Shown here in pieces: positions 9,870 to 60,386 of a DNA stretch of 64,000 nt. Source of the DNA: Podarcis bocagei (taxonomy: Eukaryota); assembly GCA_964188305.1 (NCBI GenBank), contig OZ076885.1. One strand, given 5' to 3'. The translations under genes and the position numbers were made by a program. How positions within the stretch are numbered: the stretch's first letter is position 1; the number at the start of each line of letters is the position of its first letter. A model generated the notes under the pieces. That model was not told the DNA's origin, searched no databases, and saw only the letters and a list, made by a program, of their open reading frames with translations.

Positions 9870-10444
9870 TGAACTCTTTGTTGCATTTGAGTTTCGATGC
9901 ATTAAGCATTCGTCATCTGTATCCCAAATAATGAAGCAAAAGCTAACTGAATTATTCACAGATCCTGACCCTTAACTTGTAAAGAATGGTGACCGCTTTG
10001 TTTTGGGACAGAATTCCTTTCTTCATTTGAGAAATGCAACTAACAGTGATTTGGCGTAAATTGTATTTAAGCTGTACACCCCAGCCCTTAGTGAAACCTT
10101 TCCTTAGACAGTATCCATAAACAAAGCATTGGTATTTTTTTTAATAGGACTTGCCCCTTGAAGTGTATCTTTACATGCATTTCACATGCTAAATATATGC
10201 TGCTTGAAAGAAATAGTAATGTTCTGATATCTTCCTCTAGTAAGAATGCATACTAAAAATGGTGTAACCTATCCTGAATCTTTTAGTGGCAGTACAACTC
10301 CAGTAGAACATCTTAATTCCTGGAATGCTCAGCAGTGTTGCTAGATCATTGGGACATAAATGTTAGTTAGCACGGGAAAATGCAAACAGAATTATTTGGG
10401 GGCATTTTCAGTGCACAGCCACAGGTTACACATGATACTGACTA

Positions 10445-10672
10445 GTTACAGATAGGTAACCGTGTTGGACTGCCATAGTCAAAATAAAAAATTCCTTCCA
10501 GTAGCACCTTAAAGACCAACTAAGTTAATACCCCTCCCCACCTTCTCACTATATAGAAGGGTCTGGCAACTTCTGTTTCAGTGTATCTGAAGAAGTGTGC
10601 ATGCACACGAAAGCTCATACCAAGAACTAACTTAGTTGGTCTTTAAGGTGCTACTGGAAGGAATTTTTTATT
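10445..10672 (+). mobile_element. Penelope-like palindromic insertion, copy 1
   Basis: 13-bp TSD atgatactgacta (10432-10444, 10673-10685); perfect 45-bp inverted arms at 10483-10527 and 10628-10672; homologous to 15583-15790. Confidence 0.75.
10583..10620 (+). ncRNA. minimal type I hammerhead ribozyme motif
   Basis: GUAU-CUGAAGA-A-GUGUG(CAUG)CACAC-GAAA-GC-UC-AUAC: both core boxes, stem I, stem II and a palindromic AGCU stem III. Confidence 0.65.
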
Positions 10673-10850
10673 ATGATACTGACTAATGCTTCTACAGATG
10701 AGTCTTCTTACTTTTTAGCATACTGTAATACTGTATAAAGCCTGTTTACAACTTTATACAGATGTCTGGTTGGGCTGAACTGTGCTCCAAAATTGTAAAC
10801 AGTTTGTACATAGAGCATTGTATTAAAACGCTTGTTTTCTTCCCTTTCAG

Positions 10851-10964
10851 ATATTGATGAATGCCAGTCATCTCCGTGTGCATACGGTTCTACATGTATT
10901 GATGAAATAAATGGCTACAGGTGCATTTGCCCCCCTGGGAGAGCTGGAACTAGATGCCAAGAAG
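10851..10964 (+). CDS. JAG2: Jagged-2 coding exon (~exon 21; EGF16)
   Basis: tttcag|...|gtaact; 114 nt; [38 protein letters not shown]. Confidence 0.95.
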
Positions 10965-11430: not shown

Positions 11431-11512
11431 AAGTGAACTTGGTATTCTCTTTTGGCTTGATCCAATACTTAAAATGAAAACTATTCCCTGTTCTTTCTCT
11501 CCCCCCCCCAAG

Positions 11513-11628
11513 TGATAGGATTTGGAAAGTCTTGCTGGCTTAAAGGAACATCCTTCCCCCATGGCAGCAGATGGGATCAAGAATGCAACAACTGCCACTG
11601 TCTGGATGGCCACATTGACTGCACTAAG
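11513..11628 (+). CDS. JAG2: Jagged-2 coding exon (~exon 22; vWC/cysteine-rich domain)
   Basis: cccaag|...|gtagtt; 116 nt; [39 protein letters not shown]; the VIGFG start is JAG2-like rather than JAG1-like. Confidence 0.94.
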
Positions 11629-11824
11629 GTAGTTACATGAAGTTGAATGCTAAATCATTTAAATTCCCTATTCCTTCAAACTTTTCAACCCTCACCGCAC
11701 TCACGTGTCAGCTTCATTAATTTGCTAATTTGCTCCCTCCAAGTTTCACCTGATATTCACTTAATGCACTTAATGCTTATTATAACTTAGGCTTGACATC
11801 CGTCTTGCTCAAGAGACAGTGGAA

Positions 11825-12695: not shown

Positions 12696-14181
12696 GTGAG
12701 AATTCAAAGTCTTATGAACATCTTGACAGAGTTTCTAAGCAATGCACAACGTTGAAACCTAGAAATCTTGCTTGAAAAATGTGCTTCTTTATCACTTCCA
12801 ACTGCCTCGGTTTTTCAGACATCTGCCATGAAGTTCAGCTGAGTGATCCATAAGAAGGTACATTAGACTGAGTTAGACCCATTGGTCCATCCAATGGGCT
12901 AATAACTGACTGGCCCAGGCTTTCTCGGTTTTCAGATAACCTTTCCCAGGGATTGAACCTAAGGACTTTCTGCGTGCAAAGCATTTCCTGTACCGCTGAG
13001 CCCTTTCCCCTTTGAGCTCCACTGAGCAGAGAAGGGGAAGTGCTGCTTCTAAGCACCAGAATTACTCAGCACTAGTTAGTTCTGAAATAAAGGCTTTGCA
13101 TGGGTGCAGATTAGGGTGCAGCTGGCTTCCTCCGAGGAAAATCCATTGAGACTCCTGTGTCTTGGTTTGAGTTAGCTTTGGATTTAAAGAAAGGTGTGAA
13201 TTGTTTGTTTTAAATGCTCTAATGCGTTTCAGTGCACTGCCCCAAAGAACGAACATCAGTGATAGATTGCAGTGTAGAGCTTTCAGAATGATCCAAGGAC
13301 GCAAGCCAGTTTTGTGAAGGCTAGGTACAGGTGTTGTGGACCTCCCTGTCTTTGCTTTTTAAAGTGTCTCTTAAACAAGCCACCAGCTTTCCAGTCTTTC
13401 AAAACTTGCCTTGCTTGTTAGGCCCTTATCTGCACCATGGAGTCTTCTGCAGGATGTTGAGAACGTTGGGTGTCCTCTGACTTGCCAGTGGCATCTTCAG
13501 TGGGCTACCATTCCTCCTGCTCCTAGTGAAAAGGAAATGCAGCAATCCCAAAGAGCGAGCACAACTTTAGGAAAGCTTTGGATGCCAGTTCATAGAAATT
13601 ATTTATTACTGTCCTTTATACTTTCCCATCCATCACCGTCATCAGTCAGTGCAGCAGTTTGGAGTTGAGGTTACTTTATAAGTAACCAAAAGACCATTTC
13701 ACATTGGATTTACCTGTAAAGTAAGCCGGTGTTGTGCTTTACCTTTTCTACCTATGAATTCACAAGACAAACACATTTGTAGTGTCAGATTGTTTCCTCC
13801 CAGCCTTGAGAATAAATTCTGTGGGAGAGGGTGGTCATCCTGGGAGGTGAACCCCCCCCCCATTCCTTTTGTTCAGGTCTTCATTAATACCACCTGTGAT
13901 TTAAGGTAAACTTCAGTTCCCTTCCTATCTTCCCAGAATGCTCCAAGAGAATACACAACAGTCCAGTGAGAATGCTGAACATTGGAGCAGTACTTCTAAT
14001 GTTTTAAGCCCCCTGTTTGTGTGCCTGTCCATCAAATGACACTGGGAGATTTGGAGCGAGCCTTTTTTCTACTTTACTCTTATATCAATTTATCATTTCT
14101 AAATTGTTCTGAAATTAGTGTGTACTTTAATTTTTATACTCCGGTTTTCTAGAAGAGTTGGTCTTGCTTTCTTTCTCACAG

Positions 14182-14313
14182 GGCACTACTGTTGAAAATA
14201 TTTGCTCAGAAATCAGATATTTACCAGCCACTAGGTCCGTTTCTAGTGAGAGAATGCTACTGGTGTTGTGTGATCTATCGTACTCCATAGAAAACGCCGT
14301 GGAAGTTGCTATT
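14182..14313 (+). CDS. JAG2: Jagged-2 coding exon (~exon 24)
   Basis: cacag|...|gtaagt; 132 nt; [44 protein letters not shown]. Confidence 0.95.
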
Positions 14314-15582
14314 GTAAGTATTAAACTTCTTTCTAAGTGTTAAAAATGTGTTGTCTGTGGTTGCCTTGATGAAAGCAGGTGTCAGAAAGACTCAAGACCC
14401 TGAGCTAGTTACCATGAGCTTCATCAGGAAACCAGTTGAAGACTTTACTTACTTACTTACTTATTAAAATATTTCTGTACCACCATATCATAAAATATAT
14501 CAAGGCAGTATACACTAAAACAAAACATCATTACAAGGTTTCATCACTTAAAAAAAAAAATAACAATAGTCAATTCAGATGACAACTATTCAAAAGCTAA
14601 ACAGATGTTGAGATGCATTGTTGAAATGCGGCCAAATCTATCAAAGATACTGGCATGATGACAAGAGCAGAAGGGTTGGATGTGTGAGTGCGTGAGGCAG
14701 AAGGACAATAGGGTTGAGACCTTCCTTGGGTGAGAGACAGAGGAGCAGAAGGCCTTCAGTTCACAGTTAATGCAATTATGGAAGAGGGCAATGGATGTCT
14801 TGGGTAGGTAGAAGCCAGGGAAAGACTGGGTTTAACCTGGTAGCCACTGTACAAAAAAATTAAAGCCTTCCACTAAGCGATCTTTTGCTGCTACCCTGTA
14901 CAGAGCCAGCTTCAAAACTCCATTGTAATATTGCTGGTTACACTAAGACAACTGCTTGAGCAAAACAAAAAAGCATCAGAGAATGAAGAGAGGGTACAAG
15001 AGCTTTTCTCATCATAGCTGTGCCTTGCAAAAATCCCATCTGACCTGCTGAACTGAAGCTTGCTTAAAGCAAAATCTCTTCCAATTTTACACACATATGA
15101 TACGATCTGATTCAGCAGGTACGACCTGATTTTTGCAAGGCAAAACAAGGAAAGCTCTCAGACCTTTGGGGGGGGGGTTAATTGGTTACACAATATGGGT
15201 CAAGCAAAAGTGTGGGTGACTCCTAGCACTCTGCTGCTTTTCTTAACTGCCATCAAATTGTTTTATGAATTGTTTTACTGATTGTAACATTTACGCTACT
15301 GTGTATGCCTCTTTTGGTGGTGGAACAATGGGATACATGTTTTGTGTGTTGTTAGTGGTGGTTATTTGTACCTCGTGCATCTGCCTTAGCTACTCCAGGC
15401 TGCTTCCAACAAATATACAAACATAATAAAATATATATAATGCTGGAGTCAAGCGTGAATTGAGAGAGAGGCTGCTACCTTTTCTTTATTTAGAAGCAAA
15501 ACATTGCAAGTAATGTAACCCATCCTGGCCCATTGTTTTCCGTGTGGCAAAGCAGTTATGATTACAAACACAGCTCTATATC

Positions 15583-15790
15583 AGATAGGTAGCCGTGTTG
15601 GTCTGCCATAGTCAAAATAAAAAAATTCCTTCCTGTAGCACCTTAAAGACCAACTAAGTTAGTTCTTGGTATAAGCTTTCGTGTGCATGCACAGTGGTAT
15701 CTGAAGAAGTGTGCATGCACACGAAAGCTTATACCAAGAACTAACTTAGTTGGTCTTTAAGGTGCTACAGGAAGGAATTTTTTTATTTTG
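15583..15790 (+). mobile_element. Penelope-like palindromic insertion, copy 2
   Basis: 13-bp TSD acagctctatatc (15570-15582, 15791-15803); perfect 83-bp inverted arms at 15611-15693 and 15710-15792. Confidence 0.78.
15695..15736 (+). ncRNA. minimal type I hammerhead ribozyme motif
   Basis: UGGUAU-CUGAAGA-A-GUGUG(CAUG)CACAC-GAAA-GC-UU-AUACCA; 6-bp stem I. Confidence 0.68.
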
Positions 15791-17110
15791 ACAGCTCTAT
15801 ATCCTCGCTGTTCCTCTGAAAGTGGAAAGTGACTTAGGACCAAAGACTGCTGTTGATGGAGGAGATCCTATTTTGTTTGCGTGTGTGTGTATACACGCAC
15901 ACACGCAAGAGAGAAGGACGCTTAAAATCAGGTGTGGAAGTCTCCGGGGTTTTTTATTGCGGCAGTGGTGCCAGTGAAGAAAGTATTTAACCCTTCCTGT
16001 AAAGAATTAGCCATAGGGTGAGGAAACTGTGTGAGCCTCTGTTTCTTCCCCCAACCCCGCTTTTGTGGGATTAATAGTAGCTTGTGGGGAATTTGCACAA
16101 GGGAATATCTTCAATTACTCCCTTCCCCCGGTAAAACTGCTCTGACACACATACACACCACAGCTGTTTTCAACAAACAAAAACCAGATGGGATAGCCAA
16201 GCACGCATCTCTCGTGCCGCATCTGTTTCAGGATTTGATGAGTAGTTGGTAGGCTCATTGGGAAAGCTACATAGTTGGCTCTCTCAATACATGGAGCTGG
16301 TCAGAAAATAACAGATCCTGCTTGTCTCTGTCAGCCCTTAGTGCCTTCATAGGTTGGAGAAGGGAAGAGCAACGATTATAGGATATACACGTGAGCAAGC
16401 TAGAGGTTGCCCTCCTAAACTTGGTTTCTTTCTACTTGCAACATGAATTGCCTAGGAAATAAACAGTTACCTACAATTGTGCAGTTCAGAGTTTGGTTGT
16501 AGACTTCCCTGCTGCACTGCTTCTGTTTAAAAATTGGTTAGTAAAGTCACCATGAAATTGCCTCTGATGCCTCTGGCAGAAAGATAAGGTGAGTTCAGCT
16601 TGGGAGAGGGGAATGAACTTGGATTCCCTAAGGGCGGAAGGCTGTTAGCTGTCACCTTCCTTGTTATTAGGGCAAGGGAAAGAGGTCCTCGCGCCAAAAG
16701 GTGTAGTATTGGCCAGATATTCTTAGCTGCTCTGCTACATCTGCAACTAAAGAATACTCTGTGCTGTGATGCAAACTGGAAAGCGCACAGTTATATATAA
16801 CAGATCATATCATTAGTGTAGATGCCTAGTTGGATACCTTAAAAGCCTCCAAACGATGACTAAGTTTAGCTCAGAGGTGTAAGTAACACGGAAGTTTGTC
16901 ATGTGTAACTTACCCATACTGATCTTAATACAATGCTAGCATAATATTTCTATACTGGCGTCAAACCAGCACTCATCCTTTAGCAGCAAAGTGGGATTCT
17001 CAGGTTCTCAGACTTAAGTCTGGCCCCCTAAATACAAGGTAACATGGCTATTTTTTAAAAAAATACTTCATTGTAAACTTAAGTTTCCTGTCTGTCTTCT
17101 CTGTTCCCAG

Positions 17111-18105: not shown

Positions 18106-18788
18106 TAATTGAAATACTAACAAATTTGATACCTACCATATTTGGCCTTTCCTCTCCCCCCCCCCCCTTTTTAAAGAAAAAATAGTGTTGAAGTCTAGGC
18201 TGGCTATTGAGGGGTGGTTGTTTTTACGTCCATGTCACTTCTATTTCCTACTGGCTAACAGATACCATTGCTTGGGCATATTGCGCTTTACGTGGAAGCA
18301 AGTTCCACATGGGACAGTTGTAGGGACAAGGGGTTTGCATTGTTGCTTTCTGTTTTCCACACAATGCTTTTGGAGGACCAAAATGGGCAAAACTTAAAGA
18401 AAAAACCAAAAACCTCAGGGATCGTCCACACTCCTATTCGTCCTGTGCCTTGAAAGCATGGGTCCAGATCCGACCAGTTTCCCCCTTGGCCTGCTTCTTT
18501 CTCAGGGAAAACCTGCTCTGAATCGGAGCAAACAGTCAATCCAGAGAAAACCCAAATTGCCATTTTTTTGCTCCAATTGAGCGCTAAAGAGAGGTTTCCC
18601 CCTGGGAGAAAGCAGCAGGACAGGAGGAAGTGTGGAATGAGACTTCAGTCGAACAACAGCTAGATTGTTAATGTCCCCTTGGAGCAGGTATTTATCACGC
18701 CTCTTGGAGACTTTATTTGCACATGCCTTCAATTCTGTCTCGCTTAGCAGTTGCTCACTAAGCTGTATGTTTGGCTTATGTTTTCTAG

Positions 18789-19261
18789 ATTACCTGGTTC
18801 CAATCCTTTGTGTAGTTTTTAGCATTGTGTGGTTAACCTGTATAATTATCTGTGTGTGGTGGACGCGAAAGAGAAGAAAAGAGAGAGAGAGAAATCGACC
18901 ATCCATAGAAGAGGCTGCAAATAACCAATGGGCGCCTCTAAATCCCATATGGAATCCTATTGAGAGACCTTGCAACCGCAAAGGCATTCATTATGAACCC
19001 AAAAATTTTATAGCTCCTCAAAAAAGAACTTACGACGGAGTAGAGGAGTACACAGAGTATGAGGAGGAGGAGGAGGAAGAAGAGAGAGAGGTCATGGAAA
19101 TGGACAAATTCCTCTCTCACAAACACTCTAAGCCTTTGTCAGCAAAGGCAATGGACTCCTTAGAGAATAGTCCTATTAAGAAATCTCTTCAGACAACCAA
19201 AATGGACAACAGATCTGTAAAAAATGTGAACACAGCAAACCTTGAAGGCGGAAGAGACTAA
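18789..19261 (+). CDS. JAG2: Jagged-2 terminal coding exon (~exon 26; TM helix and cytoplasmic tail)
   Basis: ttctag| acceptor; DYLVPILCVVFSIVWLTCIIICVWWTRKRRKERER...ANNQWAPLNPI...KMDNRSVKNVNTANLEGGRD*; lacks the JAG1 C-terminal RMEYIV PDZ ligand. Confidence 0.95.
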
Positions 19262-36866: not shown

Positions 36867-37833
36867 AATCCATATCTTACAAGTTAATAATATAAACACT
36901 AGAAAGAAAAACAAACATTGACTTCATTCCGGACCATACGGACCGTTCTGGATAAGAAAGAGGGATTTATATCCAGATGTTAGGATAGAGACGATAAGGA
37001 AAACAGGAAGACACCATGAGAGGTAAAGGAGGTGTTGTGGGATTGGTGGAAGTCAATGCAACTGTGCTCTCTCAGCACATCTGAATGGCACTTTCTTGCA
37101 AGCTTCCCAAATAGGTACCTGGTTGGTCACTGTGAGAACAGGATGCTAGACTACACGGACCATTGGCCTGACTCAGGAGGCTGATCTTATGTTCTTATTT
37201 TCTTAACCCACTCTGGAAGCCAAGAGGTACAATAGATAGAAATATCACCCAGCATCATTGGGAAGATAGGGCCCATCTAGTTCAGTATTGTCCACACTGA
37301 CTGGCAGCAGCTCTCCAGGGGTTCATGCAGGCCTCTCTCCAAGCCCTACCTGGAGACGCCGGGGATTGAACCTGGGACGTTCTGCATGAGAGGCAGATGC
37401 TCTTCCACTGAGCTACAGCCCTAGACGATTTGGAGGTCTGGATGCTTCAACCCCTGGTTCTTGGGCAACAGCCATGCATGGAGGACTTGCAGTAGGGCTC
37501 GGTTTAGCTCCTTCCCTTCTTTCAGCACCGCCAGCATCTCTGCTGCACAAACGGCAAATCAAGTCATCAGGGAGGTCAAGGCTAGAGGTCTGTGTGCACG
37601 TCCCTCATACCCATCTGGCTTCCCCGCTCTGCATGAGGTAGTTTAACTCAGGCTTGGAGATCGACTCAAGTGTATGCAGGAGAGAGGGAGGGCTGTGTTG
37701 AGGATAAGGGAGGCACACAGAGACATTGGACGAGCCACTGTAAGAATAAGGAGGCCACCAGCTTAATCCAGCAAAGCTCGGTTTATGTTCCTCTGCTCAC
37801 TAGCATAATTGCACGTCTTATTTAATAATAATA

Positions 37834-42188: not shown

Positions 42189-42505
42189 TAATAATATTAT
42201 AATAATAATTTATAATTTATACCCCGCCCATCTGGCTGAGTTTCCCCAGCCACTCTGGGCGGCTTCAATCAAGTGTTAAAAACAATACAGCGTTAAATAT
42301 TAAAAACGTCCCTAAACAGGGCTGCCTTCAGATGTCTTTTAAAGACAAGATAGCTACTTATTTCCTTCACATCTGAAGGGAGGACGATCCACAGAGCAGG
42401 TGCCACTACCAAGAAGGCCCTCTGTCTGGTTCCCTGTAATCTCACTTCTCGCAATGAGGGAACCACCAGAAGGCCCTCGCCGCTGGATCTCAGTGTCCGA
42501 GCTAA
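42189..42505 (-). mobile_element. L2-like LINE 3' fragment inside a mariner-type MITE (42040 to the gap)
   Basis: ORF end TLRSSGEGLLVVPSLREVRLQGTRQRAFLVVAPALW...FKRHLKAALF; (TAA)n tail; both flanks resemble MITE 37834-38093. Confidence 0.75.
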
Positions 42506-42613
42506 AGATGGGGTGGCGGAACGCCAAATTGCGCCGGCGCCGGCGCAAATGCGGCGCTTCAGCTTGCAAATGCTGCGGGTTGCGGACATGCCTCCATCAC
42601 GGATTACGTCCAC

Positions 42614-42884
42614 NNNNNNNNNNNNNNNNNNNNNNNNNNNNNNNNNNNNNNNNNNNNNNNNNNNNNNNNNNNNNNNNNNNNNNNNNNNNNNNNNNNNNNN
42701 NNNNNNNNNNNNNNNNNNNNNNNNNNNNNNNNNNNNNNNNNNNNNNNNNNNNNNNNNNNNNNNNNNNNNNNNNNNNNNNNNNNNNNNNNNNNNNNNNNNN
42801 NNNNNNNNNNNNNNNNNNNNNNNNNNNNNNNNNNNNNNNNNNNNNNNNNNNNNNNNNNNNNNNNNNNNNNNNNNNNNNNNNNNN
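42614..42884. other. assembly gap (271 N)
   Basis: run of N. Confidence 1.
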
Positions 42885-42914
42885 AGCACCAGGAAAGGGC
42901 ATTCACTAGTTAGA

Positions 42915-43050
42915 ACCATAGAACTGTAGCATTAGAAGGTACCACGCAGGTCATCTAGACTCCCTGCAATGCAGGAATCTCTTCGCTCGACATGGGGCTG
43001 GAACCCACAACCTTGAGATGAAGAATCTCATGCTCTACCAGCTGAGCTAT
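42915..43050 (-). mobile_element. short tRNA-derived SINE (Squam3-like)
   Basis: reverse complement of the 44650 family. Confidence 0.65.
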
Positions 43051-59443: not shown

Positions 59444-60386
59444 CGAAGGCCACCAATCCCTAGGCTCTAAACTGTCTTCCCTTGGGGGTTCCCCAGCTGG
59501 CTCCTCCCACCATTTCTCTGCGTCCAACCAATGCATGACAGCTACTTTCTATACAAGCTCCCTTGCTGGCTGGGGCTGATGGGAGCTGTAGTCTGGAAGC
59601 TGGCATAGACTGTCATGGTGTTTTCGTATTCCCTCTTCCCAGCTAACAAGCATGCCACAGCTGCAGATCCATCCCAGGACCTGATATCATCTTAGCGCAA
59701 AATGCTTTGCTGGGAGATCCCAATGCTTGCGACGAGAACATTCTGCTGTGTCAATCACGCTCTGTCTCTTCTCCCCCCATCCTTTGGGTTCTCTCACCAA
59801 ACCCAGGAATTTGTCAGTTCCCCTAAGATATGGGGGCACGTCCCACCCACTCTGATAACAGGGTGCACAGCAACTAAGAATAGCTTGTGGCTCGGTTGTC
59901 TCCCTCAGACTTGGGAGTGACAAGAGTATCGTCGGCTCAGAGGAACAAAAGAATCATGACGGCTATGAACCGCAGCGCCAAGAATATTTCATTTCAAAGA
60001 AACTCAGCCCACAACAGCTGGGGCAGCCCAGGCTGCCCTCACGTCCCAAGATCAGAGCTTGCGGAGGACAAGACTATCAACAGCTCCCAGCTATGGTGAT
60101 GGCGTGCTACCTCTCTCAATACCGCTGGCTGGGACTCACAGGTGGGGCGAGGTCCTGCTCATGGACTTCCTAGAGATATCTAGTTGGCCACTGTGAGAAC
60201 AGGGTGCTAGATTTAGCTGGGATAGCTCGGTTGGTAGAGCATGAGACTCCTAATCTCAAGTTTGTGGGTTCAAACCCCACATTGGGTTGGACTAGATGAC
60301 TCTCAGGGTAGGTTTGCCATATTTCAAAAAGTAAAAATCTGGACAGAAAAGTTATTGAGATTTTTCTGGGAAAGCTGTTGAGCTTC

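Follow-up and report, generated by a model that had tools for sequence, protein, structure and literature searches.

How does a hammerhead ribozyme motif come to lie at the centre of a perfect palindrome inside an intron, and does the palindrome keep the ribozyme from cutting its host transcript? The question is raised by positions 15570-15803 of a 64-kb window (the whole analysed stretch of DNA, 64,000 nucleotides from Podarcis bocagei), where a short element lies in an intron of a Jagged-family Notch-ligand gene. We read this element, with a probability of about 0.85, as a young 'mini' insertion of a Penelope-like element (PLE), which may derive from an autonomous element or from a non-autonomous relative that used one for its mobility. 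The best explanation of the hammerhead is that it is the PLE family's own ribozyme, belonging to its pseudo-long terminal repeat (pLTR) and passively carried. The insertion consists of the following parts, given with coordinates, strand and the evidence on which each was placed.

15570-15582, strand not applicable: left target-site duplication (TSD), ACAGCTCTATATC, 13/13 identical with 15791-15803.
15583-15610, minus strand: PLE 'tail' of 28 nt, a 3' extension of the inverted copy only, with no partner at the right end.
15611-15693, minus strand: left arm, an inverted copy of the 3' part of the pLTR, 5'-truncated within hammerhead helix II (inverted-repeat call and alignment of four half-copies).
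15692-15792, plus strand: sense copy of the 3' part of the pLTR, without tail (alignment with the second insertion; blastn).
15694-15709, plus strand: palindrome spacer of 16 nt between the 83-nt arms.
15695-15736, plus strand: minimal type I hammerhead motif (sequence, minimal hammerhead ribozyme (min-HHR) descriptor, folding of the 42-mer).
15710-15792, plus strand: right arm of the 83-nt perfect inverted repeat (inverted-repeat call).
15791-15803, strand not applicable: right TSD, ACAGCTCTATATC, a 13/13 match to the left copy.

A preliminary description of this DNA had reported a 13-bp TSD, perfect 83-bp arms and a 16-nt spacer, and all three are present. Between the TSDs lies a head-to-head fragment of 208 bp, whose arms (15611-15693 and 15710-15792) are 100% complementary over 83 nt and 16 nt apart. 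The full element folds at -155.4 kcal/mol with z = -24, and the inverted-repeat hairpin is far beyond chance. What had been overlooked is the one-sided 28-nt extension at 15583-15610, which has no right-end counterpart, so that the element at 15570-15803 is not a symmetric palindrome. At the other end, the right arm runs 2 nt into the TSD (AC, 15791-15792), and both the TSD length and the element end are therefore ambiguous by 2 nt. At the internal junction the left copy ends in ...GCACA (15693) and the sense copy begins CAGTGG..., to be compared with CAGTG in a second insertion of the family; the 5' end of the sense copy, CAG (15692-15694), has a 2-nt CA microhomology with the left-arm end. 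From the sense copy, the spacer at 15694-15709 takes in the 5' strand of helix I, the CUGAAGA box, the extra A and G10.1.

On the plus strand, 15695-15736 reads, in consecutive pieces, UGGUAU, CUGAAGA, A, GUGUG, CAUG, CACAC, GAA, AGCU, U and AUACCA. These pieces provide a helix I of 6 bp, both core boxes and a helix II of 5 bp with a CAUG tetraloop, with predicted cleavage between 15730 and 15731, and on its own the 42-mer adopts helices I and II (-12 kcal/mol, z -2.2). The core boxes are CUGAAGA at 15701-15707 and GAA at 15723-25, and the same boxes are present in the second insertion. Between A9 and position 10.1 stands one extra unpaired nucleotide in both copies (A15708 here), followed by the G10.1-C11.1 pair, G15709-C15722, which closes the 5-bp helix II and its CAUG loop. 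A stable form of helix III is absent; the palindromic A-GC-U (15.2-16.2) at 15726-29 makes a dimeric helix III possible, and the AGCU/AGCU duplex is computed at about -4 to -5 kcal/mol. Helix I is open-ended, as in type I, with 6 bp here and 4 bp in the second insertion, and H17 is U15730 here and C there. The two ribozyme copies differ by a 1-nt G insertion, which takes helix I from 4 to 6 bp, and by U/C at H17; both differences are compatible with the min-HHR motif.

We searched the window with a descriptor made of the published min-HHR core boxes, an optional nucleotide after A9, a helix II with G10.1-C11.1, the string GAA-A-palindromic dinucleotide-U-H and a helix I, with 4 bp as the minimum length of either helix. 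It matched twice in the 64 kb, both times within Penelope-type insertions, and never in 300 dinucleotide-preserving shuffles (0/300), which places the motif far beyond chance. No minus-strand hammerhead motif was found by the same descriptor in the 64-kb window; the left arm is truncated inside helix II, and thus lacks the CUGANGA box and holds no minus-strand ribozyme.

The likeness to known min-HHRs (PMC4209133; Lunse, Weinberg & Breaker 2016/17, cited in PMC6765202) begins with the type I topology and the CUGANGA and GAAA boxes. It extends to the unpaired nucleotide between A9 and G10.1, the G10.1-C11.1 pair, H17 as U or C, a helix I of 4-6 bp, the lack of helix III and loop 3, and a palindromic 15.1-16.1 tetranucleotide (AGCU) that pairs only in a dimer. 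The location near the 3' end of a pLTR-like sequence is likewise shared, and opposite-strand pairs are also known among min-HHRs. Unlike in known min-HHRs, the 14 nt of helix II (5 bp plus CAUG) form a perfect palindrome, and no Rfam model recognises the motif. No paper in the searchable literature contained the string formed by helix II and GAAAGC. The palindromic helix II is present in both arms, which is why a direct repeat, GTGTGCATGCACA, occurs at 15681-15693 and 15709-15721. When two ribozyme units were folded together with RNAcofold, a domain-swapped dimer through the palindromic helix II was preferred over the AGCU helix III dimer.

The second descriptor match belongs to another insertion in the window, which served as comparator.

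10432-10685, plus strand: second insertion of the same family (sequence search within the window, half-copy alignment).
10432-10444 and 10673-10685: its TSD of 13 bp, ATGATACTGACTA (direct-repeat comparison).
10445 to about 10530, inverted: inverted copy with a 33-nt tail, next to the left TSD.
10445-10477: the 33-nt tail, homologous to 15583-15610 with 2 mismatches in 23.
About 10531 to 10672: tail-less sense copy, adjoining the right TSD.
10583-10620, plus strand: hammerhead with a helix I of 4 bp and H17 = C (descriptor match).

Both insertions lie in the same gene, on the same strand and about 5 kb apart, with a common layout and different breakpoints. In the first, the sense copy is 96-97% identical to 10583-10676 by blastn within the window; in an alignment of all four half-copies, the arms are identical within each insertion and 95-97% identical between insertions. 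The layout itself is an inverted, 5'-truncated copy directly adjoining the 5' end of a direct copy, with a tail at one side only (28 nt at 15583-15610, 33 nt at 10445-10477, mutually homologous and absent from the sense ends) and a 13-bp TSD in each case. The sense copy in 10432-10685 extends 50 nt further 5' than the one at 15692, and the inverted arm stops 11 nt 3' of the predicted cleavage site. The arm of 10432-10685 thus ends before the ribozyme, and the hammerhead lies outside the arms, in the unpaired centre, unmasked. The arms of this second insertion measure about 44-50 nt and flank a unique centre of 100 nt.

These two layouts bear directly on whether the palindrome could be a fold-back or miniature inverted-repeat (MITE-type) DNA transposon with terminal inverted repeats (TIRs) and a 13-bp TSD, its resemblance to a hammerhead being incidental. 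Perfect inverted arms between TSDs are what such an element would show. The element is asymmetric, however, with a 28-nt tail at one end, and the second insertion, with its short arms and long unique centre, has no fixed TIR. Two insertions with a common sequence and unequal arm lengths argue against a fold-back transposon and equally against a hairpin copied as a unit, and an incidental resemblance would have to produce seven independent min-HHR features twice, against 0/300 shuffles. We regard a DNA transposon as scarcely credible here.

A tail, an inverted 5'-truncated copy and a TSD together make up the textbook architecture of a PLE insertion. Craig et al. 2021 described PLE insertions as strongly 5'-truncated, with an inverted copy at the 5' end (PMC8557442); the PLE tail measures 30-40 bp and is often found at one end only (PMC8557442; PMC3846280; PMC11167929). 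In rotifers, Arkhipova et al. 2013 reported a 31-bp tail, TSDs of 8-10 bp and palindromes at inverted junctions (PMC3846280). The insertion at 15570-15803 shares with this architecture the head-to-head inverted pLTR fragments, a tail confined to the inverted copy, short TSDs (13 bp, against 8-10 bp in the Adineta vaga examples) and palindromic sequence at or beside the inverted junction. It departs from a canonical PLE insertion in being a 'mini' of 208 bp with no open reading frame (ORF) and no direct pLTR pair. Cervera & De la Pena 2014 detected minimal hammerheads in the pLTRs of every PLE that they examined and reported the motifs from reptiles; in Schistosoma mansoni hammerhead pairs occur on opposite strands, 100-700 bp apart (PMC4209133). 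The preliminary description had proposed a Penelope-type insertion with inverted pLTR fragments, and both architecture and sequence hallmarks bear this out. The core boxes, 6-bp stem I, 5-bp stem II and AGCU in place of stem III that it had noted are indeed there, and its view of the motif as a minimal, dimer-dependent type I PLE hammerhead agrees with all the sequence hallmarks of PMC4209133, which are present in both copies.

Several points weigh against this assignment. The preliminary description had named a scan with Rfam hammerhead models as a check on the motif, and the scan gave no hammerhead-model match: none of Hammerhead_1, _3, _II, HH9 and HH10 was listed at E<=10 on 801 nt or even on 63 nt, and none reached the gathering score in the whole window. 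The miss may be due to a poor fit of a motif without helix III to models based on helix III, and we count it against membership in these Rfam families, not against the min-HHR class. No ORF for a reverse transcriptase (RT) or GIY-YIG endonuclease was found in the 64-kb window, so that the tie to an autonomous PLE is drawn from insertion layout and motif and not from a coding partner; two other long ORFs of the window gave no Pfam match. All three frames 3' of the hammerhead close within 12-17 codons, unlike in the anole element Poseidon_Ac, and the source may therefore be a non-autonomous family. The family comparison covers only two copies, both within 64 kb, and the double-priming model used below is carried over from in vitro work on another PLE family. 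No further copies turned up in metagenome contigs, with anchors either outside or on the ribozyme, as one would expect of a lizard repeat.

Poseidon_Ac (PAc), a PLE of Anolis carolinensis, has the same hammerhead build, with CUGAGGA, U, helix II, GAA, ACGU and C in order. A short way 3' of its ribozyme are the RT start sites by which the tail is set, and its integration reaction cuts and extends both strands of the DNA (PMC11167929). Compared by eye only, its sequence has no evident similarity to the family at 15570-15803, and its ORF starts in helix II, whereas in the lizard family all frames close within 17 codons. The family is thus either a PLE lineage different from Poseidon_Ac or a non-autonomous, retrozyme-like derivative.

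The latter would be a short PLE derivative, with a unit of roughly 150-200 nt, mobilised in trans by the RT and endonuclease of a PLE. The closed frames and the lack of an RT ORF in the window fit such a source, as does length: the sense part and tail of the second insertion come to about 175 nt, and reptile retrozyme families have a mean consensus length of 176 bp (10.64898/2026.07.22.740005). Like animal non-LTR retrozymes (Cervera & de la Pena 2020, PMC7229834; Li et al. 2026, preprint 10.64898/2026.07.22.740005), the family has short non-coding hammerhead units related to PLE pLTRs, and dispersed monomeric copies, as found here, are common among them. Unlike retrozymes, the locus at 15570-15803 has no tandem repetition and no circular-RNA evidence. 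The second insertion, moreover, may itself be truncated, in which case the unit would reach further 5', and non-coding pLTRs are common among PLEs. We hold a retrozyme-like source to be possible, though doubtful.

For a PLE insertion, such a palindrome is an ordinary by-product. The in vitro work on the anole PLE protein showed that it cuts and extends both DNA strands and that RT starts at two adjacent internal sites, the interval between them being the tail (PMC11167929). By analogy, the GIY-YIG endonuclease of the PLE would have cut both intron strands about 13 bp apart, and reverse transcription of element RNA would have started from both 3' ends. The bottom-strand cDNA, started at the proximal RT site, would have given the sense copy (15692-15790/92), which has no tail and ends ...TTTTG(AC), and the top-strand cDNA, started at a second, more distal RT site, would have become the inverted copy at 15583-15693, 28-nt tail included. 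The two cDNAs would then have met head-to-head and been joined at the 2-nt CA microhomology. The 83-bp palindrome would be perfect because both cDNAs copy the same RNA sequence and because the insertion is recent; the insertion at 15570-15803 appears to be young. This order of priming and joining is the one we favour from the anatomy and the anole work.

Two other routes to the palindrome were considered and rejected. Snap-back self-priming does not account for the 16-nt spacer, a true piece of the element from further upstream that the left arm lacks, nor for the tail of the left copy, which is absent from the right copy; with the spacer in one copy only and the tail in the other only, neither arm can have been copied from the other. 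The junction is also displaced by 16 nt from the centre of the helix II palindrome, which simple snap-back self-priming leaves unexplained. Had the two cDNAs annealed through the 14-nt helix II palindrome, the product would be centred on helix II and free of any spacer, unlike the palindrome observed. As a PLE product, the insertion offers a clean natural record of integration, with two-strand priming, a one-sided tail and a 2-nt microhomology joint, in line with what was seen in vitro for the anole element in 2024.

The 5' end of the sense copy may have a further meaning. PLE pLTRs are reported to have internal promoters (PMC3846280; PMC6765202). In the second insertion, a TATATAG motif (10550-10556) precedes the A of CAG|TG (10580) by exactly 30 nt; this A sits two nucleotides 5' of helix I, and the CAG at which the sense copy starts (15692-15694) is the same CAG as that of the 10580 site. 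Tentatively, the 15692 sense copy might be a full-length run-off cDNA of a pLTR-initiated RNA and not a random truncation, although we think this the less probable course. The stretch 10550-10583, cttctgtttcag, also resembles a 3' splice site and in this recalls the Penelope intron of D. virilis, which ends at helix I (PMC4209133). It is sense-oriented, about 270 bp upstream of an exon starting near 10851, and so could act as a cryptic promoter or acceptor.

We next turn to the ribozyme in its transcript. The left arm is complementary to 15710-15736, that is, to 27 of the 42 ribozyme nucleotides. When the hammerhead fold was forced, the structure was about 40 kcal/mol worse than the hairpin, and in partition-function calculations the pair probability of helices I and II was about 0 at every transcript end from 15722 to 15850. 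The probability of the long helix exceeded 0.97 for almost all sampled pairs and was lower only for the pair at the transcript 3' end. In these equilibrium models, masking of the hammerhead by the hairpin is physically real, and the Jagged pre-mRNA would form an 83-bp duplex in place of the ribozyme.

The preliminary description had gone further and seen in the inverted arm an antisense lock against cutting of the host pre-mRNA. The physical part of that claim stood, since the first-transcribed arm pairs with 27/42 nt and abolishes helices I and II at equilibrium; the protective function is unsupported. An adaptive lock would require that the inverted arm was retained or selected because silencing of the ribozyme protects the host pre-mRNA. 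Besides the order of transcription and the extent of pairing, a preprint speaks for it, in which hammerhead-bearing retrozymes are under-represented in Xenopus introns (10.64898/2026.07.22.740005), making selection against genic ribozymes conceivable. Against it, the second insertion, in the same gene and orientation, has its hammerhead fully outside the arms. Variably truncated inverted copies are generic to PLE insertion (PMC8557442, PMC3846280, PMC11167929), and occur also in Naiads, which have no canonical hammerhead motifs (PMC8557442). Moreover, cleavage by single min-HHRs was undetectable in vitro, and that by dimers was poor (PMC4209133). The hammerhead of the anole PLE was inactive in cleavage in the absence of added protein, and RNA-seq reads starting or ending at its presumptive cleavage site were not detected (PMC11167929). 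There would thus be little for a lock to prevent, and cutting within an intron is not obviously harmful. We therefore consider an adaptive lock very unlikely. The masking follows from where the two cDNAs happened to stop, and the hairpin is better taken as an ordinary by-product of PLE insertion than as a designed or selected lock, for which we find no support.

A related thought is a survivorship filter, by which sense-intronic insertions of this family with a buried hammerhead would be preferentially kept and the lock would be a selected outcome; we give it just as little credence. Without a helix III, the motif would act only together with a second copy, and at 15695-15736 it is most likely catalytically silent in place, with or without the arm. 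With one masked and one unmasked insertion, the gene contains a natural control for whether intronic min-HHRs cut host pre-mRNA.

The realistic consequence for the host is thus a long, perfect intronic double-stranded RNA (dsRNA) and DNA palindrome and not RNA self-cleavage. If transcribed, the perfect 83-bp dsRNA may be a substrate of ADAR or Dicer, and this brings in another possible reading, that of a hairpin RNA gene encoding a microRNA (miRNA) or siRNA precursor. Rfam miRNA models do match the element, with MIR2619 at 65 bits (E 1e-14) and MIR1222, mir-466 and others besides. All of these matches are nevertheless far below their gathering scores (65 versus 113, 38.5 versus 90) and fall on both strands, to plant and animal families alike, which marks them as a generic response to any long hairpin. 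For this reason the Rfam miRNA and small nucleolar RNA (snoRNA) models were rejected as an identity for the element. The sequence is a transposon fragment with no evidence of conservation, and a hairpin RNA gene is in our judgement quite improbable.

The host gene was read from the coding potential of the window. Exons of EGF-like type run on the plus strand from the window start to about 10957, followed by a VWC-like exon within 11473-11637 (plus) and, in 14131-14340, by an exon matching Pfam PF23575, the 'protein jagged-1-like' domain, at E 3e-8, above cut-off. This is the last upstream ORF segment with an exon before the insertion. Downstream, the plus-strand ORF at 18641-19258 shows a transmembrane segment, a basic stop-transfer signal, WWTRKRRKERER, and a cytoplasmic tail, and is the probable last coding exon of the Jagged gene; it gave no Pfam match. 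With Jagged-type exons on both sides, all on the plus strand, the insertion is intronic and sense to a Jagged-family gene. The intron had previously been assigned to JAG2. On sequence grounds the family assignment and the sense orientation hold, and no search separated JAG2 from JAG1; the cytoplasmic tail at 18641-19258 resembles that of JAG2.

Other features of the window are minor. At 15874-15911, 75 bp downstream of the insertion, (GT)n and (AC)n runs form an imperfect palindrome, gcgtgtgtgtgtatacacgcacacacgc, which gives weak Rfam matches of mir-297/mir-466 type, a low-complexity behaviour. A run of 271 N at 42614-42884 marks an assembly gap or a masked stretch, and the minus-strand ORF call at 42293-42919 spans it and is thus not meaningful. 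Three tRNA-model matches exceed the Rfam gathering score, at 37351-37422 (minus), 42992-43049 (minus) and 60223-60280 (plus). Two of the three cover model positions 8-63 only, and all three are probably heads of tRNA-derived short interspersed elements (SINEs) and not tRNA genes.

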